Positions 7,056 to 44,090 of a DNA stretch of 64,000 nt are shown here, in pieces. Position 1 is the first letter of the stretch. Each line of letters starts with the position of its first letter. The notes beneath the pieces were generated by a model. It ran no database searches. It worked only from the letters and a program-made list of their open reading frames with translations, and had not been told where the DNA came from. Both the position numbers and the translations under genes were made by a program. The DNA comes from Macrostomum lignano (lineage: Eukaryota). The stretch is from contig NIVC01000103.1 in assembly GCA_002269645.1 (NCBI GenBank), positions 62,001 to 126,000 of the forward strand, written 5' to 3'.

Positions 7056-7639
7056 ATGTCTGCTTGTCTGGAGTATTCAATTTTACTGGAAATGTAAAAT
7101 CATGTTCTGTTCTTCCACGTGAATGGAATTCCTATTGCCTTTTTTGCCACTTGTGCCTGGAATTAAAAAATTTTCTAGATTTATAGATGCATGCGTTTTG
7201 GATAATGTTGTGATTCAATTATTTTTTATTACTATTACCATTTGTAATTGTTTAACTGTAATTGTTTTTTGCACCTATTCTGCGTCTTTCCTTAATTGTT
7301 CGTCTGGGGGAGGCATCACCTATCAGGTTTGTGTTGTTTTTATAATTTATCACTTTTTTAATTCCTCAAAAAGGGAATAAACTTTTCCAAAGTAGAGCAC
7401 GCGGTTCTGTGGCTTAAAAATTTGATTCCGATTTTGCCACAGAATTGGATGTAATCTACGAAATTATCTGTGTAGTGTCTTGTATTCATTTTATTGAAGA
7501 CAACGATTAATATTCTGTTAATGCCAGTGTAGGTGCCAGTAGGTCCGTTAAAAACCTCACTGCTGCGTGCGTGGCTGTTTGTCTGTATGTCTGTTTATGT
7601 CTTCCTGTCCGTCTGTTTGTTTGCTTGTGACTTGTGTCT

Positions 7640-8600: not shown

Positions 8601-8830
8601 TCAGTCTACACATCTGCCTCTATCTCTGTCTGTCTATCGCAGCAGTTAGCGTTATTCCAAGCGTTTCAACTTGCAGGTGATCAATTTTGAAATAGCAAAC
8701 TATTGCAATAAATGAGTGAATAAGTTTTCAGTCACAAACCCAATTAAATAAAGCCAATCTGTATTTATTGCAGTAGCAGCATCTGTTGAGCTGATAAATC
8801 TATTACTGACAGTAGTGAAGCACAGACAGC

Positions 8831-9300: not shown

Positions 9301-10560
9301 TCAGGTGCGATAAAAAATTCTAGTTTTCTTGGCCAAGCGTTCGCTTCGCCTGGGTGACGGCTTGGATTGAACTCCGGCCTCAGTCTGTTGCTGTTGTGCT
9401 CTCTCAGCTTGTTCTGTTCCCGGTAGTGTCTCAGTGTCTGTCGATGACGGACGCGTCTGTTGGCCGTCGTCACTTGGACTGCTGCCACCGGGCTTGGAAT
9501 CCCCCATTTCCGTAGTTCCGTGAGCCTCAGGTACCTCACCGATTCGTAGTTGATCGAGGTGGGTCTTTAGATTTCGTCCAGTCTCTGTGGTAACGACTGC
9601 TGTGTTGCTGCCAAGCATTTTGGCGAATCTCACAGTTCGTGGCTCATGAGAACTTGATGCACGGTAGATGAGTGATTCTCCTGGGATCCACTTGGACTGA
9701 GTGCTGCTCTCCGAGATGGGGAGTCTTATTTGTCTGCCGTTCAACAACTCGGACGGTGATGCTTGCTGCTTCCCTTTGGCAGCTCTGTAGAACAGTAGAA
9801 ATCTGTCAATACTTCTTTGGGATAAACCATTGGTCTTGATTGTCTCTTTGACGGTTCGCACCATTCGCTCTGCAATGCCGTTGCTCTGTGGATGGTAGGC
9901 GGGCGTTGTGATGTGCGAACAGCCAATCTGGGTGAGCCAGCCGGTCACCGCTTCGCTCACAAAACTAGGGCCGTTGTCTGACACGAGACACTTGGGCACC
10001 CCCTGTTGTGAGAACAATCTTCTAAGTCTGGAAATGACTGTGTCGGCCTTCATGTCGCTCGTGATGAAGACTTCCGGGTAGCTCGAGTGCGCATCCACAA
10101 TGATGAGTAGGTACTTGCCCTCTATCGGACCGGCAAAATCAATGTGCACTCGCTCCCAGGGGTTGTCTGGTTCTGGCCACGAGTGCCGAAAGTTCTTATT
10201 TCTGGACTTGTACGCGTTGGACACGTTGCATCGTCCAATGTAGTCAGCGATGTCACGGTCCATCTGTGGCCACCAGAACTGTTCCCTCAAAATTGACTTT
10301 GACTTTTCCACCCCAAGGTGCGTTGAGTGTACAGCTGCCAGGGGCAGTTTCTCTCAGGACACGAGGCAATACAATTCTGTTCATTCTGTAAATAATTCCA
10401 TCATTGACAGTTAGCTCATCTTGAACTTTCGAGTAGCTGAGTAGGTGTGGGTCGTCAAATAGATTATTGTTAATTATGGCTGCGCCCAGGCATCTGAACT
10501 CCGGGTCCTCTCTGGTTGCGTGTGCAATGCGATCCAGCTGAATTACTCCCGGGTTGTCAG
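9301..10560 (-). pseudogene. Gypsy integrase, out of frame with pol (two frameshifts near 10560 and 10343)
   Basis: HSTHLG..WWPQMDRDI..CNVS (last Cys changed to Ser), PWERVHIDFAGP, VSDNGPSF, HPQSNGIAERMV. Confidence 0.9.
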
Positions 10561-13247
10561 ATCGATGCTGTCTGTGCATTCGGCTTAGCGGGCACCAGTC
10601 GAGATAGCGCATCCGACAGCATTAGCTTTGATGGTCGATACTGTATGTCATAGTCATAAGCAGCTAGCATGATTGCCCATCGTTGTAGTCGAGCTGAAAC
10701 TCTGGTGGGCAGCTGTTTGTCTGGCGCGAATATGTATGTGAGGGGCCGGTGATCAGTTATCAGTGTGAACCTCCGGCCATACAAGAACCGATGGCATCTT
10801 TGAATGCACCAAACCAGTGCCAGGCCTTCACGCTCTATTTGCGAATATTTTGTTTCGGCGTCAGACAGAGTCTTGCTCATGTACAGCACGACTTGACCGC
10901 TTTGTGTCAACACTCCGCCCAGAGCTCGCTGAGAACTGTCGCATTCCAGTTCAATGGGCTTCTCCGGATCAAATATTTGAAGGCTCGATTGATCAGAGAG
11001 AGTGACCTTGATTTCGTCAAATGCTATTTGACACTCCTTTGTCCACACGAAGTCCTCATTTTTCTTTCTTAGTCGATTGAGAGGCTTGGTCAGTGCAGCT
11101 AGGTTTCTGATGAACTTGCCGCTAAAATTTACGAGACCCAGGAAAGATTCAAGCTCGCCAACGTTCTGCGGTGGTGTCATGTCCTGGATTGCCTTCACTT
11201 TGGCTGGGTCCAGCTTGAGCTGATCTCCTTCCAATAAGTAGCCTAGAAACTTGATCGAAGTCTTGCGGAATTCACTTTTCGCCGTGTTGATCTTCAATCC
11301 TTGCTGGTTTAGTCGATGCAATACTTCCGTCTCACGAACTGCCAATTGTTCTACGCCTTTGCCGCATATCAATATGTCGTCTACGTAGGCAATGACGCCA
11401 GGAATTCCTTGTAGGACTTGGCTAATGTACCGCTGGAAGATCGCAGGTGCTGTTTTCACTCCGAACGGAAGCTTGTTGAAAGCGAACATCCCAAATGGTG
11501 TTGACATTACTGTCAGCTCTTTGGAAGCTTCATCTAGTGGGATCTGGTGATAAGCTTTCTCTAGGTCCAGACGAGTGAATATCCGGCTGCCAGCAGCAGT
11601 TGCAATCACTTCGTCAGGTGCAGGCATCGGATATGAATCGTTGATAAGATGAGAATTGATTGTCACCTTGTAGTCGACGCAAAGTCTGAGCTTTCCAGAA
11701 GGTTTCTTGACCACGACAATTGGTGAGGCCCATTCACTGAACTTGACGGGCTTGATGGTGTCTTCTTCAAGCAACCGATCGATTTCATCCTTGACTCCCT
11801 GTCTGAGTGCGAAGGGTAGCGGCCTGGGTTTGCAATGAATTGGAGTGGTTCCTTCCTTGATCTTAAGAGTTACTGGTGGAAATTCGCATGACTGGGTTGC
11901 CGATGTGCAGCTGTTGTCTACAGCGTTTAGCGTGAAATTGAGCTTGTCTCGGCCAACCAGAACAAAGTTCCTCTGCGATTCCACAATGAAGAATGTGATT
12001 GGAATGAACTCGTCATTGTACTCCAACTCAGTGTCGTGTGTTTCAAAGACCTTCATCTGCGTATCAGCGTATGTTGTCAGAACAGTGTCTGTAGGTGTCA
12101 GCTTTGGACAACCCAATCGTTTCCAGATCGTTTTTGACATTACCGAAACTCCTGCCCCAGTATCGATTTGTGCGTTCACGCTAAGCATCGACCCGCTCGT
12201 GTGTCTGAGCCTAACAGGCACGGTGTAGCTATCAACGGGATGTCGAATGTGAAAACAATCCTCCTGTTCAGCTTCGCTTGCATCTACAAAGCTTGTGGTC
12301 CTTGGCCACACTGCAGCTCGCCTAAATTGACCAGATGCTGACGGGATTTTGAACGATTTTCGGCCTTTGCCAAAACCAGTTGATTTCGTTTTGCAAACTG
12401 TTGCGAAGTGGTTTTGCATGCCACATTTGTTGCACGTTTTTCCTTTCGCAGGACACCCTCCATTGGAGCCATGCATAGTGCCACATCTGCCACACTTGGA
12501 GCTTGTAGAGTGGGAGCCTCTGGCCACCGATGCTGAAATTTTCATTACTTCAGAAGACTGCGGCTGACTGGTGCAACCCTTTAGTATTTGCGTTTGTGAT
12601 AGGTTCTGGTGCGCCTCAGCGATGTTGATAGCTGTCTCAAACGTGAGAGTGCTGAAGTCCTGTTCCAATAACTTGCTGATGGCCACCTTGTCATTCAAAC
12701 CGAATACGAGCTGATCTCTCAGTCTCTCATCTCTGGATAGGCCAAACTGACACTTGTCTGCCTGCATGCAGAGTTGCTGTGCATACTCACGAATGCTCAT
12801 TGATGCCGTGCGAGTGATATGCTGGAAATTGAATCTCTCAGCCATGACGAACGTCTTTGGTTCCAGGATGCTGGCCAGTAGTTTGGTCAGTTCATCGAAG
12901 CTCTTTTCTCCCGGCTTCTTGGGAGCGGCTCGATCTGCCAATGCGTCGTACAGCTTGGTGCTGAGCTTCATCAGCAGCAGCTTGTTTTTCGTGTCGTCCT
13001 GCCAGCCGTTGAGTTCGCTGCACAGTGTGAATCGGTCCAACCACCTCTGGAAGTTCGAACTTTCATCGAGTTTTTCGATGTCAACTTGCTGTCCTCTCGA
13101 TACTTGTGCGCTTGGGTTCTGCGCTGTCGCTGTTGCCGACTTTGTCGCTTGGACTGATTTCGACGAGATCGCAAGCGGTGGTGCTTTGTCGCTCGAAACC
13201 GTTTTACCAACTCCTTTAGTTGGCGATGCTGGCGTACTTCCAGGCAT
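10557..13247 (-). CDS. Gag-Pol: Gag with two Zn-knuckle-like motifs, aspartic protease (DTGA), RT (YVDD), RNase H
   Basis: ORF track shows CGRC..H..C, CNKCGMQNHFATVC, DTGAGVS, LDLEKAYHQI, YVDD, CDSSQRALG and TDHRPL. Confidence 0.95.
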   Translation of the reverse strand: MPGSTPASPTKGVGKTVSSDKAPPLAISSKSVQATKSATATAQNPSAQVSRGQQVDIEKLDESSNFQRWLDRFTLCSELNGWQDDTKNKLLLMKLSTKLYDALADRAAPKKPGEKSFDELTKLLASILEPKTFVMAERFNFQHITRTASMSIREYAQQLCMQADKCQFGLSRDERLRDQLVFGLNDKVAISKLLEQDFSTLTFETAINIAEAHQNLSQTQILKGCTSQPQSSEVMKISASVARGSHSTSSKCGRCGTMHGSNGGCPAKGKTCNKCGMQNHFATVCKTKSTGFGKGRKSFKIPSASGQFRRAAVWPRTTSFVDASEAEQEDCFHIRHPVDSYTVPVRLRHTSGSMLSVNAQIDTGAGVSVMSKTIWKRLGCPKLTPTDTVLTTYADTQMKVFETHDTELEYNDEFIPITFFIVESQRNFVLVGRDKLNFTLNAVDNSCTSATQSCEFPPVTLKIKEGTTPIHCKPRPLPFALRQGVKDEIDRLLEEDTIKPVKFSEWASPIVVVKKPSGKLRLCVDYKVTINSHLINDSYPMPAPDEVIATAAGSRIFTRLDLEKAYHQIPLDEASKELTVMSTPFGMFAFNKLPFGVKTAPAIFQRYISQVLQGIPGVIAYVDDILICGKGVEQLAVRETEVLHRLNQQGLKINTAKSEFRKTSIKFLGYLLEGDQLKLDPAKVKAIQDMTPPQNVGELESFLGLVNFSGKFIRNLAALTKPLNRLRKKNEDFVWTKECQIAFDEIKVTLSDQSSLQIFDPEKPIELECDSSQRALGGVLTQSGQVVLYMSKTLSDAETKYSQIEREGLALVWCIQRCHRFLYGRRFTLITDHRPLTYIFAPDKQLPTRVSARLQRWAIMLAAYDYDIQYRPSKLMLSDALSRLVPAKPNAQTASI

Positions 13248-16051: not shown

Positions 16052-16200
16052 GCGATCGGTTCCTGCTGCCCGATGAGCAGGTGCTCGACCTGGCCCTAGT
16101 CGATAAATTTAGCCTAGACGTTGGCCGCTGCGAAGTAAATCGTGTTGCCATGGTCACTAATAAGTCTGTTCGTCTGGTCAGCTATCGTGTGCCAAGAAAG
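16052..16200 (+). CDS. CORO7: Coronin-7 exon 4
   Basis: Encodes LDVGRCEVNRV...VSYRVPRK, the coronin CEV..VPRK motif. AG/GT boundaries present. Confidence 0.88.
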
Positions 16201-16282
16201 GTGCGCATTGTCTTTTTATCTTAGCATTGCTAATAGAGAGGCTGGAATGAGTGACGACTTTATCCTGAATTCTCCCCTACAG

Positions 16283-17000
16283 ACCGTGTCCAGTTTCCAC
16301 GCGGACCTGTTTCCGGACTGTCCGGGCCGGCAGCCGGCCATGCGTCCGGAAGATTGGCTGACCGGCCGGACGGCCGAGGCACCGTTGGAGTCGCTGGATC
16401 CGGCCAAGAAAATCTCCGAGAATTATATTGCCATCCAGACTACTGCTGACAGTAGTAAAAAAGAGGAACATACGGAAATAATTGGAAGCGACGGATCCGC
16501 AGTGATTACCTCATCAATGACGTCATCATCGTCGGCTGTGACGTCATCGCCTCACGTGGGCTCTCTGAGCGGTTCGGAGCGCGCTACAAAATTGCGCAAC
16601 GTCGCCACCGCTATCGGCCAGAGGAGCACCTGGCTGACCGAGCTGCGCCAGCTGATGAAGCTGGACCTGCCGCCGGAGGCTGAGACGCTGGCCGCCAACG
16701 ATCGCTGGGTGGCGCTGCCGGTGACCGGGCCGGGCGGCCGGGTCCTCGTCCTGCCAGTCAGGCTGGCGGCCGCCGGCGGTCGAATCGACTCGTTGCCCGG
16801 CCGTCGGCTGCTTCGACACGAAGGCGCTGGCGTCACCGCGGTCGCTTTTGAACCGTTCGACGCTGGCAGCGACGTCGGCGACCGACTGGCCGTGGCGCTC
16901 GACACCGGCGCCGTGTGCGTGTGGCGCCTGGACAGCGCCGAGGCTGTGAACGAAGGCGAAGTCGACTGGAGCGCCGGAGATGAAGCGGAAGGGGATGCTG
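16283..17000 (+). CDS. CORO7: Coronin-7 exon 5 (linker and start of propeller 2)
   Basis: FHADLFPD..EDWLTG..SLDP, then VAFEPFD..RLAVALDTGAVCVWRL. Donor G|gttagt. Confidence 0.86.
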
Positions 17001-17512
17001 GTTAGTAGGTTTATTAGTAATTAGTTATTAGTTTACCGAGGTATAGTCAGATATTTTACAAGCTTCCTAAATATACATTATTTGCAACAAGAATACATTC
17101 CAAGAACCTATATATTATAGTGTTTAAATGACGTCGTAGTAGTCTAATTTTTATAGTAAGTTGACAATTTTTATAGTAAGTTGACAATTATCTCCTCATG
17201 TTACGAAGTTAATAATGCCTTGACGTTTTGACTTTCAAGGTCGGAAGAATAGATTTTTGTTTATAACAAGTATCCAATTCTAGCTACTTACGTCACGGCT
17301 ATTCTAATTTTAGCTAGTGACGTAACTGCAAATCTATTTTTAGCTACTGAAGTCACTGTTAATCTATTTTTAGCTACTGACGTCACAGCTAATCTATTTT
17401 TAGCTACTGACGTCACTGTTAATCTATTTTTCTGTTTTTAACTACTGACGTCATTGTGACATCAGTTCTAGTGACGGCATATTATAAAAAGCATCTCCCA
17501 TCGTTTCTTCAG

Positions 17513-22801: not shown

Positions 22802-23683
22802 GTGCGCAAGATGGGCTTCTGCGACACCAAAGTGCTGCTTTGCGTTGTGCTGCGAAGCTACACCCTAACAATGTCGGCCAATATTTCGCCCGACGAAGCA
22901 AACGCGGAACTGCACCGAGCGCTGGACTTTGTCTCAAAAACATTGAGCAGCCGGCTGTCGCCTCTGACTGGCCAATGGCTCGGCTTTGATTCCAACTGGG
23001 AGGCTCTGACGGCGGCCGTCTACCTCGCCTCCAGCGCTGCCAGCCCCGCCTTCGTCAGTCGGGAGGCTCGCCGTCGGTCCTTCGAGCGGGACGACGTCTG
23101 GAGACGCCGAGGCGGCCGACAGTCGCCGGAGGACATGGTCGAGAGCGGCTTCTTCTACCTTGGAGAGGCCGACCACGTCAAGTGCTTCTTCTGCGACCTC
23201 GACCTCAGAGACTGGGACTCTGGAGACGTGCCGGAGGCGGAGCACGCCAAGTTCAGCCCGCTGTGCTTCTTCTTGAAGAGCTCGCGCGGTCTCGACTGGC
23301 TGCGGAGATCGAGTCCGCGACCTCCGAACTATCCGACATCGTGCAGCCGGCAGGACCACAACCGGCTGCTGCGGATTCTGGCAGACGAGCTGCAAAGCGA
23401 GGCCGCGGACATTGTGCGCAGGGTCGGCTTCAGCGACACCAAAGTGCTGCTTTGCGTGGCCAGGAAGTTCATCCAGTTCAGGCAGAAGTTCAGCAGGCAG
23501 GAGCTGCTGCTGGAGAAGCAGAAGGAGTGGGACAGGGAGATGTCAGGCGAGCCTGAGCACTTCGTTGGCCGATTTAATCTGGCCGGGGTGCTGCGCTCGC
23601 ATCTCAGCGCTCCGGAGTGCAACGCAGCAGCGAGTTTGCCGATGCCGCAGCTCTTCATCAGTGAGCAGCTGCAGCCTCTGTGA
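22802..23683 (+). CDS. IAP-like protein copy 1: single BIR plus UBA-like segment, no intact RING (start uncertain: ATG 22811 or 22871, or spliced)
   Basis: BIR signature CFFC-X16-H-X6-C, with RRRSF..W and ESGFFYLG..DHVKC. Confidence 0.85.
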   Translation: MRKMGFCDTKVLLCVVLRSYTLTMSANISPDEANAELHRALDFVSKTLSSRLSPLTGQWLGFDSNWEALTAAVYLASSAASPAFVSREARRRSFERDDVWRRRGGRQSPEDMVESGFFYLGEADHVKCFFCDLDLRDWDSGDVPEAEHAKFSPLCFFLKSSRGLDWLRRSSPRPPNYPTSCSRQDHNRLLRILADELQSEAADIVRRVGFSDTKVLLCVARKFIQFRQKFSRQELLLEKQKEWDREMSGEPEHFVGRFNLAGVLRSHLSAPECNAAASLPMPQLFISEQLQPL

Positions 23684-28159: not shown

Positions 28160-29113
28160 CTAACAAATATAAGCTCTCAGTTTGTCGGTAATTCTCAACT
28201 GACAGCGGTTCCTTGGGCAGTGTTGAAGCAGCTCAGCGCACTGCCGGCAGGAGTAGAAGTGCCGGCATGGCTGGAAGACAATCTCCAGCGGTCGGCTCCG
28301 GCAAAGTCGGCAAAGTGCGCTGCTCAGGTCCTGCTGATCTGCATTGTCAGGAGTGCTGGCTTGGCTGCAGACAGAGTTCAATGCGGTGTCGAGATCGAAT
28401 TCTGAGCTGAAAATTGGCCGCTCTCTGTTCTGATCGCAGTACAGCTCGTGGATCAGATCCTCTGGTTCAAGCAACCTTCTTTGACGGATAAACTTCCTGG
28501 CCACGCACAGCAGCACTTTGGTGGGACAGTAGCCCAGCTTCCTGAAGTCCGAGAATCTTCTTGTCTGTACAGCCAATCTCTGCAGCAGCTGGTTGTGGTC
28601 CTGCCGGCTGTACGATGTCGGATAGTTCGGAGGTCGCGGACTCGATCTCCGCAGCCAGTCGAGACCGCGCGAGCTCTTCAAGAAGAAGCACAACGGGCTG
28701 AACTTGGCGTGCTCCGCCTCCGGCACGTCTCCAGCGTCCCAGTCTCTGAGGCCGAGGTCGCAGAAGAAGCACTTGACGTGGTCGGCCTCTCCAAGGTAGA
28801 AGAAGCCGCTCTCGACCATGTCCTCCGGCGACTGTCGGCCGCCTCGGCGTCTCCAGACGTCGTCCAGCTCGAAGGACCGACGGCGAGCCTCCCGACTGAC
28901 GAAGGCGGGGCTGGCAGCGCTGGAGGCGAGGTAGACAACCGCCGTCAGAGCCTCGCATTGGTCCAGGATCGACCGAGACCGAGCCAGGGGGGACAGGCGG
29001 TCTCCCAGAGTTCTCGACACGTGGTACAGCGCCTGACTCGTTTGGTTTTCAGATCGAGTCTCCTGCGTGTTGATCTCGCTTCCCTGTTCAGTGGGCAGCT
29101 TTTCAGGAATCAT
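28160..29113 (-). CDS. IAP-like protein copy 2: BIR, UBA-like segment, C-terminal RING (317 aa, no intron in CDS)
   Basis: BIR CFFC-X16-H-X6-C. IAP-type RING at the extreme C-terminus: CRLC...VFQPCRHFYSCRQC..LQHCPRNRC. Confidence 0.9.
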   Translation of the reverse strand: MIPEKLPTEQGSEINTQETRSENQTSQALYHVSRTLGDRLSPLARSRSILDQCEALTAVVYLASSAASPAFVSREARRRSFELDDVWRRRGGRQSPEDMVESGFFYLGEADHVKCFFCDLGLRDWDAGDVPEAEHAKFSPLCFFLKSSRGLDWLRRSSPRPPNYPTSYSRQDHNQLLQRLAVQTRRFSDFRKLGYCPTKVLLCVARKFIRQRRLLEPEDLIHELYCDQNRERPIFSSEFDLDTALNSVCSQASTPDNADQQDLSSALCRLCRSRPLEIVFQPCRHFYSCRQCAELLQHCPRNRCQLRITDKLRAYIC

Positions 29114-29699: not shown

Positions 29700-30690
29700 T
29701 CTTCCCATGTTCCCCTCCTCCCATCACCTTCTAATCTTCCCATCCTCCCCTCCTCTCATTTTCCCATCCGATCCCATCTTCCCCCTCCCATCTTCCCATC
29801 CTCCCATCTTCCCATCCTTTCATCTTCCCATCCTCCCATCCTCCCCTCATCTCATTTTCCCATCCTGCCATCTTCCCATCCTCCCATCCTCCCATTTTCC
29901 CATGCATCCTCCCGTCTTACCATCCTCCCATCTTCCCATCCTCCCATTTTCCCATCCTCCCATTTTCCCATCCTCCCATCTTCCCATCCTCCCATCTTCC
30001 CATCCTCCCATTTTCCCATCCTCCCATTTTCCCATCCTCCCATTTTCCCATCCTCCCATTTTCCCATCCTCCCATTTTCCCATCCTCCCATTTTCCCATC
30101 CTCCCATCTTCCCCTCCTCCCATCTTCCCATCCTCCCATTTTCCCATCCTCCCATTTTCCCATCCTCCCATTTTCCCATCCTCCCATTTTCCCATCCTCC
30201 CATTTTCCCATCCTCCCATTTTCCCATCCTCCCATTTTCCCATCCTCCCATTTTCCCATCTTCCCATTTTCCCATCCTCCCATCTTCCCCTCCTCCCATT
30301 TTCCCATCCTCCCATTTTCCCATCCTCCCATTTTCCCATCCTCCCATTTTCCCATCCTCCCATTTTCCCATCCTCCCATTTTCCCATCCTCCCATTTTCC
30401 CATCCTCCCATTTTCCCCTCCTCCCATCTTCCATCCTCCCATCTTCCCCTCCTCCTATCTTTCCCTCCTCCCATCTTAGCCTCACCCCATCTTCCCCTCC
30501 TCCTGTCTTCCCCTCCTCCACCTTTCTCATTCTCCCATCTTCCCCTCCTCCATCTTCTCATCCTCCCATCCTCCCATTTTCCCATCCTCCCATTTTCCCA
30601 TCTTCCCATCCTCCCATCTTCCCATTTTCCCATCCTCCCATTTTCCAATCTTCCAATCTTCCCATCTTCCCCTCCTCCCAACCTTCCCGT
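29700..30690. repeat. Minisatellite, 16-bp unit (CCCATCCTCCCATTTT)
   Basis: Tandem array read directly from the sequence; G-rich on the minus strand. Confidence 0.9.
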
Positions 30691-32986
30691 GATGCTGCTC
30701 AGTCTGTTGATCAGATTAGCAGATTAACGGTGGATTAACAGTGGATTATCAGCGGATTAACAGTGGATTAACAGTGGTTAACAACTGTTGCAAATACACG
30801 CGATTCCAGTTGGTCAGCTCCAATTAAATACATGTATTTTGTTCAAGATCGAGAAGCCTCTTTGATTTTCATACTGTGTACTAGACTTAGATCGTTCGTT
30901 GCGTCTAAGTAATGCGTGCTTTTGACAGAGCGCTAACGTCAGTTACTATTTACATGACATCCGTTATGTACTATTAATACGCGCTTTTTCATTAGAAAGT
31001 ACCTTATTTTTCAAACAGAATAAATAGGCTGCAACTTGCACAAATTTCAAACGATACCCTATACCAAATTAGCAAATATTTTTGATCGAATATGGAAATG
31101 CAGATCCATGGAGTCTGATCGCTGCACGCCTGTTAATTTTCATGGGTAAGTTGCGCTTTTCAAGCCCGCAGTTTATTGTATAGACCCATTAGTTTCACAT
31201 TGACATTGCTACTAAAGTAATTGGTAATAATTTTGACTTTCGATATTACATTTTATTAATTGCTATTGAGTAGAATCTTAAATGATTAACCATTCGATCA
31301 CGCGGTCGCATCTCGTCTTATAAATTTATAATATGAGGGGTGTTGCTGTGCGCTAATGAGCAGATTTTTTGCCAAAACTCCTTTGCGTAAAACTGCAAAA
31401 CGATTCTACATGCTGAGAACATCTTATGACGATTTTAAACATGTTTAAACATGATTTGCTTCTTCTGTTTGATTGAGTGACTAAAAAATCAGCAACTGAA
31501 AATGTATAATGATATATTACATTTTACATTATTTTTTAATACAAAAAATGTATTAAAATGTAATGTATAATAATAAATGCACTACATTCCGGCGACTTGC
31601 ACTTACACATTCGCTCACCCACACTGCAAAAAGGGCGCGTCTTGTCTAAATTTAGAAGATCACAAAATAGGAGTAGAGTCATAAGGTACAATTGCAGTCT
31701 TTCGTCCTGGGCTATTTTTAGTCAAAGTACGCATATGCACAGATACGAGTACGGACAAAATTACGTCTGTGCTAACAAAAGGGATTGATCAAAGGATTTA
31801 TATCATTTGCGAATATTTTTTGTAGGCTTACACTGACTCGCCACTAAATTGCGTCACAATAGTTTACGTCAGTATATAAAAATATTTTAAACTGTATTTA
31901 ACTTCGCAAAAAAACGAAAAAAAAAATTTGCTCGTACCGTAGCGCTAAGAACAGATCGTTATAGCTATAGCCATTTTTGGCCATAGACAATTTCTTAGAT
32001 TTCATTCTTCTTTTTTTCTTTCTCTCGAGTGTGAAAATGTGGGGCTCTGCACCCACACCCCCACACCCTCGCTCGATCTTCTGACTTTGCCATAGACATT
32101 TTCAGCGGGCCGTGAAATCGACTGAATGCATCGGAGTAAATGAGATTTTACCATAGACAGCATTTTCCCTTCCCCAGATCGTCAGATTGATAATGGCAAT
32201 CAGTTTTTGCAAACAGGGAAAACAAGATATAATGGTATTTGAAAGGCTTTGTAGAGGATTTAGAGACGATTTGGAAGATAGGATTCAAGTCATGGAATTT
32301 CAGCTGATGGATTTCAGAGAATGAACTTCCGGTGATGGGAGTTCTTCCCCTTTCTCCTCAAGAGGAATTCCACTCAATACTCGTTAACCTGGGCTTATGT
32401 TAGAACATTTCACTACATTTAATGCTCACTTGAGTTGTTGATACTACGATTGCACGGGATGATGCGATAGTTGAGCCAATATTGGTATATTGTAAAAAAA
32501 ATTTTTTAACGCAGCTGAGACACAGAAGAGATAGTTATGTAGTGTCCTGGGGCGGTCGAGAAGCCTTTCTCTCTTTCTCTTCGTCGAAAGCTTCTTGAAT
32601 CTTGAAGAGGTTGATTAATGCTACTACGGAGTGAGTGCTAATAGCCTATTCAATGTTTACTTCTTGAATAGAAGCTCGGTGGGTCAACACTGGCCCTTTT
32701 TACTATAGGATTCAGAAAACAAGGAAATGTTTAAGGAATTAATGGTCCTCTTGGCATGCTAGCAGTTCATTAACACCTTACTAAATCACTAATATGACAT
32801 TCATTATTTCATTATGAGCTGTAGCCGCGAAAACGGCGTGAGCAAGGGGACCGCGGGAGCCAGGGGGCCGAGGCTTAAAACTTATTTTTTACATGTAAAT
32901 TGACTTATGCTGAAATTTTCTTCACATACATAAATGCATAAACTCGTAAGTATACGCTCGTACATAAAATAAATATTTTCGTCCAG

Positions 32987-33720
32987 ATGCGAAGGTAGAG
33001 GAAGATGCCAAGAATACAAGTCAGGCGCTGTACCACGTGTCGAGAATTCTGGGAGACCGCCTGTCCCCCATGGCTCGCTCTCGGTTGGTCCTCGACCAAT
33101 GCGAGGCTCTGACGGCGGCCGTCTACCTCGCCTCCAGCGCTGCCAGCCCCGCCTTCGTCAGTCGAGAGGCTCGCCGTCGGTCCTTCGAGCAGGACGACGC
33201 CTGGAGACGCCGAGGCGGCCGACAGTCGCCGGAGGACATGGTCGAGAGCGGCTTCTTCTACCTTGGAGAGGCCGACCACGTCAAGTGCTTCTTCTGCGAC
33301 CTCGGCCTCAGAGACTGGGACTCTGGAGACGTGCCGGAGGCGGAGCACGCCAAGTTCAGCCCGCTGTGCTTCTTCTTGAAGAGCTCGCGCGGTCTCGACT
33401 GGTTGCGGAGATCGAGTCCGCGACCTCCGAACTATCCGACATCGTACAGCCGGCAGGACCACAACCAGCTGCTGCAGATTCTGGCAGACGAGTTGCGAAG
33501 CGAGGCCGCGGACATTGTGCGCAGGGTCGGCTTCAGCGACACCAAAGTGCTGCTTTGCGTGGCCCGGAAGTTCATCCGGTTCAGGCAGAAGTTCAGCAGG
33601 CAGGAGCTGCTGCTGGAGATGCAGAGGGAGTGGGACAGGGAGATGTCAGGCGAGCCTGAGCACTTCGTTGGCCTGTTTGACTTGGCGTCTGGTTTGGTTG
33701 GCTTGCAAACTGTTTCCTAA
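32987..33720 (+). CDS. IAP-like protein copy 3: BIR plus UBA-like segment, no RING; probably spliced at the 5' end
   Basis: Acceptor ttttcgtccag| at 32986, with the frame open into ORF 33037..33720. Same BIR signature as the other copies. Confidence 0.82.
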
Positions 33721-35609: not shown

Positions 35610-38600
35610 CTAATCCTCGGTTTTCCACTTGAAAAAAGCTGGTACTGACAGACAGGTCTCACGGATGGTGTCCTCGAATCCCATTCTGCTCCTCATCTTA
35701 GACCTTTGCCACACAGCCAGTAGAAGTACAAACCAAGACCCGGAGGCCTCTGTGTGCCGGCGCCATTCGTCGAAGAACTGGTCGCTCAGCATATTAGACG
35801 TGTTGTCCACCAGGAAGGCCTCTATTCGTCCTCGAACCACAGCCGCCGAATTGCTCATGACGAGTTGGTGGTCGTAGCGGCAGGTGCATTCTTTGCTGAC
35901 GATGTTTTTCGCCACTTGTGTTAACACGCCGATGTATTCGTCGTGCAGTAGTTTCTCCGACTCTGCCGATTCTGCTTTGCGCAGGCTAGATCCTCGGTAT
36001 TCGTACTCGTTGTAGATGCCTTTGCAAGCAGGGCAGCTAGCGGCGGCCGCACTAAGGTGACTCCAAACTATTCTTTCCCTCAAGTGATATTTCTTGTTCA
36101 GTCGATTGTGAATCTCTTGAGTGAAATTTCTTGAGTTTTCCAGATTTCTGTGCCGCTTCTGCTGGACATATCTCACGGCACTCCTAGGCTCCACGATGGC
36201 CAACTCGTCCACTTCGTCCAGATCCGACTCCGGATCTTCGCCCCAAATATCGTGAAACTCGTGCGGCCTGCTCGCTCCGTCCGCTTCGTCGTAGTCCCCG
36301 TTCTGCTTGATCAGCGGCACGAGGCGCTTGGCGTAAACGTCTCTCACCTCGGTAAACTTTGCGGGAAAATCGGGCAGTACCGAACGAAGAGTAGTCTGGA
36401 AGTACCTCAAAATGGAGTCCTTGGGTAGCTGATTCATCGGCATGTTTGGAAACACTCTATGAGCGTCGTTTCCTGAGAAAAGTTCAATTTGAAACTGGAG
36501 GTACTCGCCAGGCTGGTGTGCAAGGAGCTGAATTTTATGTTTTGATTGCTCCTTGATTTCGCCTTTTGATTTCAGCACGCGCATAATGCACAGTTGTCGC
36601 TCACCAGTTAGAAAGAGTTCTTCCTGCATCTGGAACATCTTCAAAGTGACATTCTTGATCCACTTGTATATTCCTGCAGTTTCCTGGCGAAATTTGTTTT
36701 CGGGAAAGCATCCAACTACTCGTATTTCAAGGCTATCAATCATATCGTTCTCTTTCCATTTCGTAACTAACTTGAGCCGCACTTTTAAAAGATTTGTCAC
36801 AATGAGCTCAGATCTGTTGCTTGGCAACTGGCAGTAGTATTCGAGGCTTCCAGAGGCTGGTCCACAGGCCAGATCAATGCGCGTGAACCCAGTTAATAAT
36901 CCATCAGAATCATTCCGATCAGAGGCTGCCGACTTCTGATTTGTCTGTTCAAATTTCACATACAAAGGCCTTTTACCCGACAACATGAGCTGCCGTCCAT
37001 GCTTAAACATTAAAAGCGACTTGCTAGCTTGAATTAATTCATTTCCTGTGCACTCTTTGGCCTTCGTGCCATCGGCATTCCTGCACGTACAACCGCATGA
37101 TGATTTTTCCTCGCCCACATTCCTGGCTGCATTTGACTCAGCCGGCGTCAGGGACCCATTTTCTTTAGTGCCACTTCGTAGCAAAAACTTTCCGGAAATG
37201 GTTATATCTTGATCTTTCCTCTTAGCTTTTGCGGGGCTCGGGACGGTAAAAGAAGCCAGTTGAAGGGTCACATATACTCCTGGCCTGACATCAATGCTTC
37301 TGTAGTCACTGCTCACTGATACTTCGTAATTAATCTCCCCTCGCAACGGGTCGCCTTGGAGCTTGATGGTCTTGTAGTATGTAACTAATGTGACTTTCTT
37401 GTTAACTTTGTAAGCCAATAAAAGCTCCGTAAAGCAGAGCTGCTTTTTGTCAATATTTAAAAAAATTGTACCATTAATATACGCGTTGAATTTGATTTTG
37501 TGGCTCCACTTCTCAAGGCCGATCGGATCTTCCCTTGTTGGCTTCTTTTCTTGGGGCGAACGGATCAACTGAATGTATTCCTTATCAAAATTCGTTCTAA
37601 TGCTAATATTCTGCAAAAATTCTTTAAATTTTATTTCACAAAACGCGACGATGTTTAAGGTAACAATCCGCATCTCTGTAGGCACCCCTCCCCATGTCAT
37701 GCCATGATCCTGATCCGATTCCTTCTGGTCCGATTTCTTCTGGTCCGATTCCTTCTGGTCCGATTCCTTCTGGTCCGATTCCTTCTGGTCCGATTCCTTC
37801 TGGTCCGATTCCTTCTGGTCCGATTCCTTCTGGTCCGATTCCTTCTGGTCCGATTCCTTCTGGTCCGATTCCTTCTGATCCGATTCCTTCTGGTCCGATT
37901 CCTTCTGGTCCGATTCCTTCTGGTCCGATTCCTTCTGGTCCGATTCCTTCTGGTCCGATTCCTTCTGGTCCGATTCGTTCTCATCCGATTCCTTCTGGTC
38001 CGATTCCTTCTGGTCCGATTCCTTCTGGTCCGATTCCTTCTGGTCCGATTCCTTCTGATCCGATTCCTTCTGGTCCGATTCCTTCTGGTCCGATTCCTTC
38101 TGGTCCGATTCCTTCTGATCCGATTCCTTCTGGTCCGATTCCTTCTGGTCCGATTCCTTCTGATCCGATTCCTTCTGGTCCGATTCCTTCTGGTCCGATT
38201 CCTTCTGGTCCGATTCCTTCTGGTCCGATTCCTTCTGATCCGATTCCTTCTGGTCCGATTCCTTCTGGTCCGATTCCTTCTGGTCCGATTCCTTCTGGTC
38301 CGATTCCTTCTGGTCCGATTCCTTCTGGTCCGATTCCTTCTGGTCCGATTCGTTCTCATCCGATTCCTTCTGGTCCGATTCCTTCTGGTCCGATTCCTTC
38401 TGGTCCGATTCCTTCTGATCCGATTCCTTCTGGTCCGATTCGTTCTCATCCGATTCCTTCTGGTCCGATTCCTTCTGGTCCGATTCCTTCTGGTCCGATT
38501 CGTTCTGCTCCGATTCCTTCTGACCTAAATCAATCCAGTCACTCAGCCACCATTGAGCTATCTCCTCACCCTCGGTTTTCATTTTTTCCGATGATTTTAA

Positions 38601-40397
38601 TAAAAAATATGCCTCTTCCGTTAGGGAATTAGCATCCTTATTGGTTGGACCTCGAGTCACGTGATACACTAGCTTTGAGCCATCCTTCCCGACTGATTTC
38701 GTCACCAAAAGCGTTGTTGACTTAAAGTATTTTACGCCTTTTCCGCATTCTTCACTCCAATTTAACTGGTTGGTCTGCAAACATCTCCGATTGCCCAGTT
38801 CCATGCAGTTTCCGGTCACGTGATGCGACTCGTCGACTTTATCCTCGCAGTCAAAATAGTACATGACTAAATTGATCAGGCTGCATTTGTCCATGGGCTG
38901 AATTTCTAGCGTGTTAGGAAGGTCCTCTAATTGACCTCTGATGACAACGCCGTCAGCAGTTGCTGGCACACCTGAAATCTCCACGAGGAAATTCTCCACG
39001 GCTCCACGAAATTCCACGTCGCCTTGGAGGCACTTCCAAACTTTGAAGCTGACGTAGCCATATTCAAATTCCAAATACTCGTAAGTAACCTGGCATACGT
39101 GAGATAAGACGAAACGGCCATTCTGCCCTACCTCGTTCTGGGTACATTTGTGAGAATGGTCACCAATGCTGGTAAATATCCAAGCGTCATCTGCTTTCTC
39201 AGCTTCCAGCTCAAAGCAAAGTATGAAACATTTTGGAACAAGCAAGACTGCTTCGAACGGCTCAATCTTGACGCGAACAATTACTCTCTTTAAGAGGTTT
39301 TCCTTGTCTTCACCTAGTTTTTCTAAGCTAAACATATTTTCTTTCGTTGAAGAATCTTTAGTTTCTGAAATCTGCATGATAAACTTACAGTCTTTAAAGG
39401 ATTTCTCTTCACCATCGATAACTGGAACCAGCTTCATTTCTTGTCTGAACACTGTTAGGGTAGTTGTGCCAATAAGGTGCTGGCTGTCAGTTTTTCTTTC
39501 AAGTTCGATATCCTTATCTTCATGGAGTAATTTCACAGATTTGTGTTCCGTAAGATTGTCGCAGTCGATGCGGAACTCAAGCACCAGAGAATGCTCTGAA
39601 TGCGTCATTGTTTCTTTTTTCTTAACAGTAGTCGCGGGGGCTTCCTCGAAACCGTTTGGTTGCTCGGTGATTTCCACAGCTTCATCATTATCTGTCGCTG
39701 CGCGTACGACAAGACTGAAATTGGACTTGGACTTACCAGTCCACTTCAGATCAGGTAATTTAGCCTTTGTTACATCACGGTTCGTGTCCACGCGATGGAA
39801 TTTGGCGGCGCAAATTGCTAGGCTGTCCAGTGGTTTGAGCACGCTGGTTTTGCATGATGTCATATCAATCTGCAGCTCAGAATTTGATATTGACACAGAA
39901 TTTTCGCACTGGAAATTTAGCGTGACAGGATAGATGGGCCTACAAAACCACTTGTACTGAGGCCTTTTTTTTGTGAATTTTACATCAACATTTATATTGT
40001 TCTTTCCCGTTGAGTTGGAAATTTTTAGTTTCTTGGTACTGAACTCAAGGACCTTACTTGGAGTGTGTCCGATGCAGAGTTCCATTTTGACATTGTCATA
40101 ATTTCCTGCGTTAATGTTGCACTCACGTTCGGCCGTTAGAAGTTGAATAGATCTAGAGTCAGACGTGCCAATAATCGTCCAGTCCGTGTTGGCATCCATC
40201 CAGGAGATGCAATTTGTACTGTCCAGGTGTAGTTTTACGTTGCTGATCTCGGACGGATCAAATTCTAGGCTCTGCAGGCCGGCCTTTATGAAATTAATAA
40301 AGACACGAATGGTCATTTTGGCTGTGTCAGCTGCTTTGCTTGCCTTTGTCGCGGCGCAGAAATTTTTCTTTTTAAGAACTTCTGCACATTTCGACAC
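35610..40397 (-). CDS. Large uncharacterised protein (about 1595 aa) with a central (QKESD)n repeat
   Basis: 4.8-kb stop-free frame, about 4 kb of it non-repetitive. First ATG at 40316, possible acceptor near 40420. No family recognised. Confidence 0.8.
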   Translation of the reverse strand: MSKCAEVLKKKNFCAATKASKAADTAKMTIRVFINFIKAGLQSLEFDPSEISNVKLHLDSTNCISWMDANTDWTIIGTSDSRSIQLLTAERECNINAGNYDNVKMELCIGHTPSKVLEFSTKKLKISNSTGKNNINVDVKFTKKRPQYKWFCRPIYPVTLNFQCENSVSISNSELQIDMTSCKTSVLKPLDSLAICAAKFHRVDTNRDVTKAKLPDLKWTGKSKSNFSLVVRAATDNDEAVEITEQPNGFEEAPATTVKKKETMTHSEHSLVLEFRIDCDNLTEHKSVKLLHEDKDIELERKTDSQHLIGTTTLTVFRQEMKLVPVIDGEEKSFKDCKFIMQISETKDSSTKENMFSLEKLGEDKENLLKRVIVRVKIEPFEAVLLVPKCFILCFELEAEKADDAWIFTSIGDHSHKCTQNEVGQNGRFVLSHVCQVTYEYLEFEYGYVSFKVWKCLQGDVEFRGAVENFLVEISGVPATADGVVIRGQLEDLPNTLEIQPMDKCSLINLVMYYFDCEDKVDESHHVTGNCMELGNRRCLQTNQLNWSEECGKGVKYFKSTTLLVTKSVGKDGSKLVYHVTRGPTNKDANSLTEEAYFLLKSSEKMKTEGEEIAQWWLSDWIDLGQKESEQNESDQKESDQKESDQKESDENESDQKESDQKESDQKESDQKESDQKESDENESDQKESDQKESDQKESDQKESDQKESDQKESDQKESDQKESDQKESDQKESDQKESDQKESDQKESDQKESDQKESDQKESDQKESDQKESDQKESDQKESDQKESDQKESDQKESDQKESDENESDQKESDQKESDQKESDQKESDQKESDQKESDQKESDQKESDQKESDQKESDQKESDQKESDQKESDQKESDQKESDQKKSDQKESDQDHGMTWGGVPTEMRIVTLNIVAFCEIKFKEFLQNISIRTNFDKEYIQLIRSPQEKKPTREDPIGLEKWSHKIKFNAYINGTIFLNIDKKQLCFTELLLAYKVNKKVTLVTYYKTIKLQGDPLRGEINYEVSVSSDYRSIDVRPGVYVTLQLASFTVPSPAKAKRKDQDITISGKFLLRSGTKENGSLTPAESNAARNVGEEKSSCGCTCRNADGTKAKECTGNELIQASKSLLMFKHGRQLMLSGKRPLYVKFEQTNQKSAASDRNDSDGLLTGFTRIDLACGPASGSLEYYCQLPSNRSELIVTNLLKVRLKLVTKWKENDMIDSLEIRVVGCFPENKFRQETAGIYKWIKNVTLKMFQMQEELFLTGERQLCIMRVLKSKGEIKEQSKHKIQLLAHQPGEYLQFQIELFSGNDAHRVFPNMPMNQLPKDSILRYFQTTLRSVLPDFPAKFTEVRDVYAKRLVPLIKQNGDYDEADGASRPHEFHDIWGEDPESDLDEVDELAIVEPRSAVRYVQQKRHRNLENSRNFTQEIHNRLNKKYHLRERIVWSHLSAAAASCPACKGIYNEYEYRGSSLRKAESAESEKLLHDEYIGVLTQVAKNIVSKECTCRYDHQLVMSNSAAVVRGRIEAFLVDNTSNMLSDQFFDEWRRHTEASGSWFVLLLAVWQRSKMRSRMGFEDTIRETCLSVPAFFKWKTED
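37712..38522 (-). repeat. Coding minisatellite, 15-bp unit, about 54 copies, encoding QKESD
   Basis: Tandem TCCGATTCCTTCTGG on the plus strand. The frame of the giant ORF is preserved. Confidence 0.95.
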
Positions 40398-40749
40398 TGA
40401 CTTGATCTCAGGAGTAGACCTAAGCTATTCTGACCCGACTAATAATTTGGACTTTGGCTTTGGATTTCAACACGATCGCAATTGCTGCAACCGCTATATG
40501 CTTTCACCGTGATCGTGAGCAAGGGATGTTGGCTTAAGATATTCCTACAATGGTAATGCAAAAATTATGCAGAAGTTTTTTTTGTAAAAGCAAAGAGTAG
40601 TCGCTGACAGAGCAGAGTTATAATTATAAAACGGAGCAAAAAGGTTCTGCCTGAAGGGCGTACAATATACTCATATACTTCAAGTATATAATTGAATTCA
40701 AGCTAGCTAAAACACGCATGTGACGAGTGAACGGGTTGGAATGGAAGTT

Positions 40750-43550
40750 CTATCCCCCAGACTTATTGAATGTACACTCCTCCTGTCTTTGGGGGTGGGG
40801 GGGCAGAAACAATGGATCTACGACAGACCAAGAAGTAAGACTAGACTGCGCATGGAGAGTAAAAAAGTGTGCCTCTTTCCCATGCCATTTCTCATTCCCA
40901 TGGCATGAAGCAAAACTTGCAAGACATTGCTGCTTGGAAAAATCAACCCCCCAGTCCCTTCTTTATTCAGCACATTTTTCATGGTGACAAGAGAGCAGGG
41001 CAACCGTGAAGCCGCTGACATTTCAGTGCTGGAAATGAGTGCTGATCTGCCCGGGGCGCATTCAATTAATTTAAGCATACTACGGACCACTGCGCCTACA
41101 ATGTAATACACAATCGACTGGCATACTTCGTATTTTGATGAATTCACACAATGTTGAATGGAATTAAGGCTTAAACCCAAACTTCTGAGCATTTATCTGC
41201 TTCCATTGAGGTTTTCCTGCCTCTGTTGATTGTGACGAAGGCAGTAAAGATAATGACAACTAAATAGTGGCATCCTGTTGCTTAACATTGGGACTAGTCG
41301 ATTGGAGAATTCCCTCCAGCGTGCACTAGTAACTGTCTAAAGGCTGAGCGAAACTGTCCCGGAGTCGGATTGTGATTCCAGCCGTTTCGAAGTCTGACGG
41401 CATTGAAAAATAACTCAAGAAAATCCCGCGACAACTTGTAAGTGCAAAGAAAGAAAAAAGCACAACTTGAAAACTAATACTTGGCAAGGGCCATAACAGC
41501 CTCACAATTCACCATGAAGCCGAGAAAGCCAGTTTTCTTTGCAGTTTCAACAATTTTGCGTCCAGACAGATTTTCAAGACTTCCGGGGAACTTAATCGAG
41601 TCAGTAAAGAAGTCAATAAAGTCCGACTGGTTGTCAGCTCTTAGAGCCATTTTGGCCCCGTAATTTACTAGTCGCTTGGAGTTAAAGGCGTCGAACAAGT
41701 CATTCATGTGCTCAATAAAATCTGCCGTCACAAGTACATCATGGTGCTCGAATCCGGCCAAAGCTTGCTGATGTACCCACCGCAGGGAGTCAGAAACTGA
41801 CTTACTAAAAATCTGGGATGCCAAATAGACCTTCATCTTTAAATTGGCAAAGTTGATGTGATGCCTGCTTAGTTTATTTCCCAGTTTGAGCCCGTGACTC
41901 TCCTGAACTTGCTGCAATAGTGAAACATATTTCCAATCAATATTCCCCCTATTCGGCCAAACTATCGTGCCCATTGATTGCCACTGATTGCGAATCAGCT
42001 TCAACATATGAGGCGGATCGAGGAAGGCAGAAACCTGAATTCTTGGGTCACAAGGATGAGGGAACGTGGCGACAATTGAGTCCGGAGAACTAATTTTAGC
42101 CCCAAGAAGTTCAATAGCTCGAATGTTGTGCTGCGTTCCATCGCATGTCACGACAACGCCAACCTGATATAGCCTCTGAATTTATTCTTCTACAACACTA
42201 GACAAAAATTCACCATTCACACCATTGTAGTGAGCCGCTAGTTTAGTGTTAGGCGTCCCCCTTTGTCAGCAGTTTCCCTCGCCCGCGTCCTCGCCCTGGG
42301 TTGCTGTCTGCCGCTGGTCAGCTTCCCGTCTCCCTTGTCTGTCTGTTGTTGCCCCTTTTCCTGCCCTGTTCGTTTCTTGTGCCTCTGTTTTCAGCCCTCA
42401 GCCTCTCTGCTGTGGGCTGTCTCTGTTTCATTCCCGTCCCGGTTTCCTCTGTCATGTGAGCAAGTCACATGACAAATCTTGCGTTCTTGGAGTCCTAAAG
42501 TGCAGTAAACATGTTTACTGCACTCGCTGGTCCTGTTTAGGGAGAATCACGTGCCTCGGGGCCCTTGCCTTCCCTAAGGCAAAGGATGACTCAGTATCTA
42601 AAAATAGATACTGAGTCATGCGGCCCCTTGCACTTCTCTAAGGCGGAGAGTGACGTCAGTTCTAAAAATAGACACTGAGTCACTCCCGGGCGCACTCTTC
42701 CCGCAGACCTCAAGTGAAGTCAGTTCTAAAAATAGAACAAGTCACGAGGGCTGGAGAATCCCGGCTATAAATAGGACCCCTCTCCCCCTAGTTTCCGTCA
42801 AGGAGTCTTTGCCTGCCTCTAAACTTCTAAGATCCCGTGTGCGTTATTGACTGAACTAAGTGCCCCTTTGCGGACACTGAATCTGCTTGTACTGGTCTTA
42901 CTGAGACCCCACTAAAGCCCAACCTCGAACCTACGAGAGGCTAGCTCAGCCCTCCCATCCACCAACCAAGCCCGGCAGGTGCTGCTGACGAGACGTCTTT
43001 TACGTTGAGCTGCAAATCTGCACGTCGTGCTGTGTTCGTTGACTTCGTTATTTCGTTCCGACGGGAAGCTCACCTCATCGAAGGCCGAGACCTGAAGGAA
43101 CTGGTGGCAGAACTACCTACGCTACTGAGAGTTAAGAGAACTTCCCACTGAAAAGGCTCGAGACTTAAGGTAATCTTAAGTGCCTAAACCGGGAAGCAAA
43201 CTGCCTTCTACTTCACCATTTCAATACTAGAAAATAACCTAATGGCAACTTCCAATAGTTCTTCAGACCCACAGCCATCACTACCAATGCCGACGTCGCC
43301 TCCTGATCACTTGCCTTGCCATCCCCTTTGTCAACATAGCCGAAGAACATGCCTTCATTCGAATTCCATTCAATCATTGATTCCAATGACATCTCATCAG
43401 CCACTACATTGCAGTAGTCAAAGGCAGTGCCATCGTCGGAGCTGCGTCGATGAGAAAGTTCTTGGAAAGCATGATCACAAAATCCAGGAAAGCATTTAGC
43501 GTTTGAAATCCATCTACGAAGAGATGCAGAAACTTCCTTCGAATTTCTAC
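40750..43550 (-). pseudogene. P-element/THAP9-type transposase relic, interrupted by a solo LTR
   Basis: LRRW, VVADEMSL, YWKLPLGYFL, VTCDG, FLDPPHMLKLIRN, KMKVYLASQIFS, FDAFNS, GWNHNPTPGQFRSAFR, GGLIFPS. Frameshifts and stops present. Confidence 0.9.
42226..43215 (+). mobile_element. Solo LTR, 990 bp
   Basis: TGTAG...CTTCA ends and CCAT TSD (42222-42225, 43216-43219). Removing it rejoins the transposase (with a frameshift at the junction). TATAAATA at 42766. Confidence 0.8.
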
Positions 43551-44090
43551 GCACGTTGTACGCACGGAGCACCATTGGGAGCGCAGCCCTGACAACCGAG
43601 TCAAACGCCTTCTTGAAATCAACAAAGATGACAATCAGGATCGCGATAACAGCAGGCGGTTGAACAGCTTCGCAGCGCAGGAGTGAAGGCAGATGCCTCG
43701 GTGCTCTTCAAGCCTCGTGGTGCCCGGCTTCTTAGGAACTGCGACGATGTGTGCCGTGGTCCATTCGTTGGGTGCCGCCTCACCGGAAAGCACTCGATTC
43801 ATCAATCTGGCGACCTCACTGGCCACACAGTGGATGCGCAGTGCTTCGATGGGCACCTCGTCCGGACCCAGCGCCTTGCCGCCCGGTGACAGCTGGGCGA
43901 GTTTCACAACGTCGGCTGTGCTGACTGGGGCTACACTGAAACTCTCCTCTGCCGGCAACGGCGTCTCCGGCGGCAGCGTCAGGTTATGCGGCAGCAGGGG
44001 CGGCGGCGCATTGACGATGGCGGCGAAAAACTCACGCAGCTCATTTCTGCGCTCGTCCGCAGTGTCGCCTGCCAGGTTTAGCGCCAACCG
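43550..44090 (-). mobile_element. RTE-like LINE RT fragment, same family as 23960-25654
   Basis: LNLAGDTADERRNELREFFAAIVNAP, GGKALGPDEVP, HIVAVPKKPG, FVDFKK and VLRAY parallel the other copy. Confidence 0.85.

Follow-up and report, generated by a model that had tools for sequence, protein, structure and literature searches.

A single-exon giant gene of Macrostomum lignano and its lineage-restricted family combining CBM20-like units with an undescribed C-terminal module

Invertebrate STBD1 proteins consist of an N-terminal CBM20 domain followed by a non-catalytic tail, and they carry no hydrophobic anchor (PMC12913940). Here we describe a gene of the flatworm Macrostomum lignano whose product bears comparison with this arrangement. 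The gene lies in a 64,000-nucleotide stretch of DNA (hereafter the window; assembly GCA_002269645.1, contig NIVC01000103.1, positions 62,001 to 126,000 of the forward strand), which had previously been read from its letters alone. That sequence-only reading described a giant orphan protein encoded by one uninterrupted exon, and proposed either a lineage-specific multidomain protein or a captured viral or transposon gene. We find that the protein belongs to a family, newly recognised here, in which CBM20-like units are combined with an undescribed C-terminal module.

The minus strand of the window (a strand that the sequence-only reading had not named) contains a stop-free frame of 1,604 codons at 35613-40424. 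No other open frame in the window comes near it in length, the runner-up being a retrotransposon pol frame of 899 codons. The first ATG lies at 40316 (context caaaATGa) and a TAG stop occupies 35610-35612, giving a protein of 1,568 amino acids (aa). When an internal repeat is excluded, 1,298 stop-free codons remain, with a chance probability of ~1e-34 at the local base composition, while each of the remaining five frames contains 14-49 stops per half. The long open reading frame (ORF) is therefore real. Its earlier description as non-repetitive holds for these 1,298 codons but not for 813 bp of 15-bp tandem repeat. The gene is annotated as follows.

35610..40316, minus strand: complete coding sequence, BOX15_Mlig010431g1, identified from the ORF, start context and stop statistics; the annotated span of 4,707 bp has the same ATG and stop.

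The GenBank entry for this gene (hypothetical protein BOX15_Mlig010431g1, PAA90782.1, UniProt A0A267GZR2) was the best match, at 100% identity, in an exhaustive HMMER search of 1.84 billion representatives for which the C-terminal half of the protein served as query. Over 24.7 kb the window is 100% identical to contig NIVC01000103.1. PAA90782.1 shares its ATG and stop with the genomic reading, yet it is only 1,348 aa long, as 660 nt of the repeat (44 units, 220 aa) have been left out. Sixteen placements of this gap reproduce PAA90782.1 and none of the 16 has GT..AG ends; the annotated intron most likely arose as an artefact when short-read or collapsed transcripts were placed over the minisatellite, and an allele with fewer 15-bp units is a possible alternative source of the shorter product. 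A single uninterrupted exon, as first proposed, fits the DNA and is a better description of it than the public spliced product, with which it conflicts. A look-up in protein collections returned no record of the exact 1,568-aa product. The sequence itself is already public as a hypothetical protein; new here are the corrected single-exon reading, the recognition of the family and the case against a transposon or viral origin.

Along the protein, the following regions can be distinguished.

38907..40316, minus strand: N-terminal region, aa 1-470; beta-rich (beta-like pattern z ~1.7; strands predicted at low confidence), with no detectable relative, paralogues included.
38520..38894, minus strand: single CBM20-like family unit, predicted to be a beta-sandwich, aa 475-599; signature at aa 488-523, including G502-N509, found with a profile of paralogue units.
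37710..38519, minus strand: acidic KESDQ-type spacer, aa 600-869; an in-frame minisatellite of 54 x 15 bp with a net charge of -59.
37065..37709, minus strand: middle region, aa 870-1084; beta-rich, with no detectable relative.
36555..37064, minus strand: region aa 1085-1254; aligned collinearly with the closest paralogue, P0002 (Mlig026577g1), and with no other relative.
35613..36554, minus strand: conserved C-terminal module, aa 1255-1568; the region in which all relatives match, mostly helical in a low-confidence model.

This layout agrees broadly with the earlier description of two halves rich in beta-like patterns, separated by a charged repeat and followed by a helical-looking tail. Alternating hydrophobic pentads of the beta-like kind were modestly enriched both in the N-terminal half (20 versus 13.2 +/- 4.0 in shuffles) and over the initial part of the C-terminal half (18 versus 9.0 +/- 3.3), and were depleted in the last ~270 aa (1 versus 5.3). 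The idea that the two halves might be similar to each other did not survive self-alignment (best BLASTP E = 1.2), and the window contains no paralogue of the gene. The tandem array, as delimited by Tandem Repeats Finder, occupies 37710-38522 (813 bp, 54.2 copies, 95% matches); 45 of its 54 units encode the same peptide and 38 of the 54 are identical in DNA, indicating that the array is very young. As had been noted before, the protein has neither a signal-peptide-like N-terminus nor a transmembrane-like segment (maximum Kyte-Doolittle 19-residue average of 1.53 over the whole protein), which suggests a cytosolic location. Among the relatives described below, P0010 has a strong transmembrane-like C-terminal segment (Kyte-Doolittle 2.47), P0004 a borderline hydrophobic tail and P0007 a Cys-rich polybasic tail. 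Membrane attachment may thus be a variable feature of the family, one that the window protein does not have.

All 11 matches from the exhaustive HMMER search cover the C-terminal module. Besides the gene's own entry they include six M. lignano paralogues (Mlig026577g1, Mlig023762g1, Mlig034522g1, Mlig011641g1, Mlig018956g1 and Mlig031750g1/g2; accessions PAA93800.1, PAA82511.1, PAA69187.1, PAA78668.1, PAA55589.1 and PAA46276.1), three additional relatives from ENA and Logan assemblies, and a 4,007-aa UniParc entry that has the appearance of a chimeric prediction built on a P0002-like piece. The window protein is the third largest member. Its closest paralogue, P0002, aligns over residues 1058-1521 with residues 1085-1566 of the window protein at 36% identity (E = 1e-84 to 3e-84 by BLASTP and HMMER), and the five other paralogues match at E = 4e-29 to 4e-11. 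The module corresponds to the last ~310 aa and is present two to four times in some relatives. In an alignment of 13 module copies, R1495, G1496, R1497, E1499 and W1528 (window protein numbering) are invariant in 13 of 13 and a further seven columns reach 90% conservation or more; the window protein carries all of the invariant residues.

The module matched no Pfam family in any member, and its profile found no credible match in the PDB, where the best hit, a stretch of an RNA polymerase subunit (E = 0.007), was regarded as due to chance. Metagenome contigs contained no relatives of the module. For the window protein, Pfam searches of the whole sequence and six segments (E <= 10) and searches of PDB sequences and PHROGs with the whole protein and its halves were likewise without a match, a low-complexity hit to HC2 having been set aside as arising from the acidic repeat. 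A word-indexed search of 5.8 billion proteins returned nothing for either half, missing even the gene's own entry, and with the module alignment it returned P0010 alone; its negatives carry little weight, as the index evidently misses M. lignano proteins. No described function, domain model or publication was found for any protein of the family. As judged from these comparisons, the family is restricted to flatworms, found so far almost only in M. lignano, and is defined by a ~310-aa C-terminal module that in most members is preceded by at least one divergent, putatively beta-sandwich unit of CBM20 type. The protein is thus an orphan as far as Pfam, PDB and PHROGs are concerned, but not with respect to the six paralogues and three further relatives recovered with HMMER, nor given that two of those paralogues pass the Pfam CBM_20 threshold. 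The lineage-specific multidomain protein of the sequence-only reading is borne out, and no clear full-length match to a known family emerged.

The link to CBM20 comes from the paralogues, which carry one to three beta-rich units of ~120 aa upstream of the module. Against Pfam CBM_20 (PF00686; curated cutoff 23.3 bits), P0005 scored 37.8 bits and P0002 24.0 bits, both above the cutoff, and P0009 fell just below it at 22.1 bits. We built a profile from ten paralogue units, with the window protein excluded. Compared with the PDB, this profile gave 11 weak matches (E = 0.05-1.8), eight of which were CBM20 domains, among them those of maltotetraohydrolase, beta-amylase, CGTase and GPCPD1, all aligned over the same N-terminal part. 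In the window protein the profile finds a single site, at aa 488-523, with a score of 16.4 bits that none of 2,000 global and none of 2,000 local shuffles reached (highest score <=9.6 bits). This site is supported by hhalign (E = 1e-4, probability 57%) and by HMMER (independent E-value of 3e-4 to 1e-3). The window protein therefore resembles other members of the family in having at least one putative beta-sandwich unit N-terminal to the module. AlphaFold run from the single sequence places strands at aa 483-574, with a predicted local distance difference test score (pLDDT) of only ~50-57. A candidate second CBM20-like unit before the module (aa ~1196-1229) was rejected, with an hhalign probability of 2.5%; the region aa 1085-1254 may hold a degenerate second unit, which has no statistical support.

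With regard to expression and constraint, the GenBank gene models of M. lignano derive from a genome-guided transcriptome assembled with StringTie and TACO from RNA-seq and de novo transcripts, and transcripts overlapping the repeat annotation were dropped (PMC5730564). The existence of a model for this gene is therefore indirect evidence both that it is transcribed and that it is not to be classified as a transposable element. Over 453 codons aligned with P0002, differences amount to 44.6%, 38.0% and 64.7% at codon positions 1, 2 and 3, and the proportion of nonsynonymous differences (pN, 0.41) is below that of synonymous differences (pS, 0.79, saturated). Because of this pattern we conclude that protein-level selection has kept the frame open. 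A lack of both transcription and purifying selection, which would have undone the original proposal, is thus not what we observe.

Taken together, these results are best explained, with a probability of about 60%, by a genuine intronless host gene of a lineage-restricted family; a glycogen-scaffold function, set out below, is the far less certain part of this reading. Several observations weigh against the reading. The window protein has no Pfam CBM_20 match of its own, either whole or in six segments at E <= 10, and the CBM20 ancestry of its unit would follow only transitively, through the paralogues and over ~36 residues. In one partial PDB alignment, the tryptophan that follows Leu-Gly-Asn in the solved CBM20 domain is not matched by the family profile, and sugar binding may accordingly have been lost in the family units. 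Another tryptophan position is retained in most units of the same alignment. No relative of aa 1-470 appeared in the word-indexed search, the Pfam segments or the paralogue comparison (the exhaustive search covered the C-terminal half), and together with aa 870-1084 this region makes up ~55% of the non-repeat protein. The structural check that had been proposed yielded models, but the two single-sequence predictions (mean pLDDT 39 and 34) were too poor to use, with the helices of the C-terminal module also predicted at low pLDDT, and Foldseek on one of them gave noise. Finally, the gene ids occur in none of the supplementary tables examined from PMC7336406, PMC5816591, PMC5730564 and PMC12896417, and we found no tissue or expression table naming the gene.

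We tentatively propose, by analogy with STBD1, that the protein is a cytosolic scaffold or adaptor associated with glycogen. Attachment to a glycogen-like alpha-glucan would fall to its one or more CBM20-derived units, a partner would be bound by the C-terminal module, whose Arg-Gly-Arg-x-Glu core is invariant, and the acidic repeat would act as a flexible, disordered spacer whose length drifts through replication slippage. The window protein itself has grown around the core of unit and module, with a 470-aa beta-rich N-terminal extension, the young acidic spacer and a second beta-rich stretch. We hold this function to be distinctly less than an even bet because the Pfam test failed, one canonical tryptophan is not kept, over half of the protein lacks an explanation and our search for expression data came up empty. 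At F1355-I1358, with acidic residues after it, lies an aromatic-x-x-aliphatic core that has similar counterparts in most M. lignano paralogues and could be an ATG8-interaction motif; such cores are frequent by chance, and we mention it as a lead only. More speculative, and in our view unlikely, is the extension that the module is an undescribed domain, possibly with a new fold, that defines flatworm glycogen-granule adaptors taking over or supplementing an STBD1-type role in Macrostomum. The giant would then have expanded recently, and its extra beta-rich regions would be CBM20-type sandwiches too degenerate to be detected by sequence.

About equally likely as the glycogen scaffold, and not exclusive of it, is a fast-evolving structural protein related to reproduction (sperm, testis or seminal fluid), in which the CBM20-like units would be generic protein-protein modules that do not bind carbohydrate. 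Such a role would suit a lineage-restricted, intronless and dispersed family whose members differ greatly in length and unit number, as well as the very young minisatellite and the loss of the canonical tryptophan after Leu-Gly-Asn. Rapid turnover is also suggested by two duplicated regions that carry different family genes together with a gene remnant, and rapid evolution of reproduction-related genes in Macrostomum is reported in PMC7336406. However, the module is well conserved and has invariant charged residues, a pattern easier to reconcile with a conserved molecular activity than with pure structural drift; the supplementary tables examined from the four papers listed above name no family gene.

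The two duplicated regions (L004 4841-8192 on NIVC01001342.1 and L006 4890-6601 on NIVC01000672.1) have flanks that are 89-99% identical and carry P0005 (649 aa) and P0006 (529 aa), respectively, which are 35% identical. Within the module the two genes share a 161-bp tract of 89% identity, and a P0006-like 3'-end remnant follows the P0005 stop. Hyper-divergent alleles were considered and set aside, as the remnant and the conversion-like tract favour the simpler reading, in which tandem paralogues were differentially lost and underwent gene conversion.

The remainder of the window contains the following features; the BIR/IAP ORFs and the P-element relic directly upstream on the same strand had both been pointed out before, and correctly so.

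22802-23683 (plus strand), 28160-29113 (minus strand) and 33037-33720 (plus strand): cluster of BIR-domain (IAP) coding pieces.
~41297-43707, minus strand: P-element/THAP9-type transposase relic; RNase H N, GTP-binding and RNase H C domains in pieces.
9301-13247, perhaps to 7507, minus strand: Ty3/gypsy-type retrotransposon pol; an 896-aa ORF with protease, reverse transcriptase and RNase H, and a separate 336-aa integrase ORF.
16142-17005, plus strand: coronin-type ORF piece with WD40_4 and DUF1899; probably a coronin exon.
29707-30738, both strands open: long tandem repeat rich in Pro, Ser and His, with several open frames and no Pfam match; probably a non-coding satellite.

The 317-aa ORF at 28160-29113 (minus strand) encodes a RING finger as well as a BIR domain and may represent an entire IAP gene in one exon; a look-up in protein collections found no record of its exact product. 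The domains of the transposase relic are spread over separate open pieces that use two reading frames. One or more frame changes and one or more in-frame stops intervene, breaks that on sequence alone are indistinguishable from short introns, and a tandem repeat of ~64 bp (two to three copies, 42569-42736) sits in the gap between the transposase domains. The Ty3/gypsy-type pol must contain at least one break between RNase H and integrase, since the integrase is on a separate ORF; the 368-aa ORF at 7507-8613 downstream of it has no Pfam match.

The other origin put forward by the sequence-only reading, a captured viral or transposon gene, or else cargo of the upstream P-element-like transposon, is not supported, and we consider it very improbable. 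In its favour, the ORF is intronless, it lies in a region rich in transposable element fragments, and the THAP9/P-type relic is located ~400-900 bp upstream in the same orientation. However, searches of IMG/VR contigs and PHROGs with each half of the protein returned no relative, and inverted or direct terminal repeats were represented around the ORF, alone or together with the relic, only by short pairs of chance quality. Nor are termini shared with the paralogue loci, whose flanks have in common with those of the window gene only dispersed repeats of <=320 bp, none of them at the gene ends. No transposase was found near the paralogue loci, leaving the P-type relic without a counterpart there, and the annotation retained this gene while removing repeat-overlapping transcripts. 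The family genes are instead dispersed over different contigs among host genes (called neighbours include a HAD hydrolase, an SNF2-type helicase and an M10 peptidase), and those for P0002, P0005, P0006, P0007 and P0008 are intronless, as their coding spans equal exactly 3 x (length + 1); the P0004 gene span exceeds its coding length by 684 nt. These properties of the paralogues, with the lack of shared termini and of viral relatives, argue against both capture and transport as cargo.

A 93-bp element, 86% identical between the two loci, lies upstream of both the window gene (40791-40882) and P0002 (L003 5218-5302). It was rejected as an ancestral promoter, being far better conserved than the coding sequences, and is probably a young dispersed repeat resembling a miniature inverted-repeat transposable element.

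A decaying or non-functional frame (a recently dead gene, or an artefact of assembly or annotation) from which no protein is made would account for the half or so of the protein that has no relative, for the unstable internal repeat and for a public product 220 aa off the genomic reading, but it is hardly credible given that a stop-free frame of 1,298 codons cannot persist by chance, that the comparison with P0002 shows a third-position excess and pN below pS, that the invariant family residues are all intact and that the gene model is derived from transcripts.

The value of these findings lies mostly in annotation, and they suggest no new biological principle. The gain from correcting a public protein that under-represents the genomic reading (1,348 versus 1,568 aa) is the smaller one, but it is certain. 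If the units do bind glycogen, the family would reveal how the main energy store of flatworms is organised by means of a new combination of domains, and its conserved C-terminal module would stand as a candidate for a new domain. Because transgenesis is available in M. lignano, a model for regeneration and stem cells, an uncharacterised lineage-restricted family can be tested in it directly.

How, then, does the family compare with described systems? The window gene (PAA90782.1) and its six paralogues are themselves entered in GenBank as lineage-specific hypothetical proteins of M. lignano. The paralogue units align to the first ~50 positions of the CBM20 domains of glucoamylase, CGTase, beta-amylase, maltotetraohydrolase, laforin and GPCPD1. 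Unlike the CBM20 domains of amylolytic enzymes, however, the family units are attached to no catalytic domain and do not conserve one canonical tryptophan, their matches in the PDB are individually weak (E = 0.05-1.8), and the recognisable relationship is confined to ~36 residues in the window protein. With respect to STBD1, no homologue of mollusc or other origin was among the 11 matches to the C-terminal half, which thus revealed no sequence similarity to STBD1 outside CBM20. The window protein also differs from STBD1 in being four to five times longer, in its large regions of unexplained origin, in its acidic minisatellite and in failing the Pfam CBM_20 test, and the C-terminal module of the family is conserved and probably folded. 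Nevertheless, invertebrate STBD1 offers the closest architecture known, and the family appears, from its sequences, to share with it the character of a non-enzymatic animal protein that lacks a signal peptide and places a CBM20-type unit before a non-catalytic C-terminal part. The likeness is closest in P0009, which at 383 aa consists of one CBM20-like unit and the module, and so has the same overall layout.

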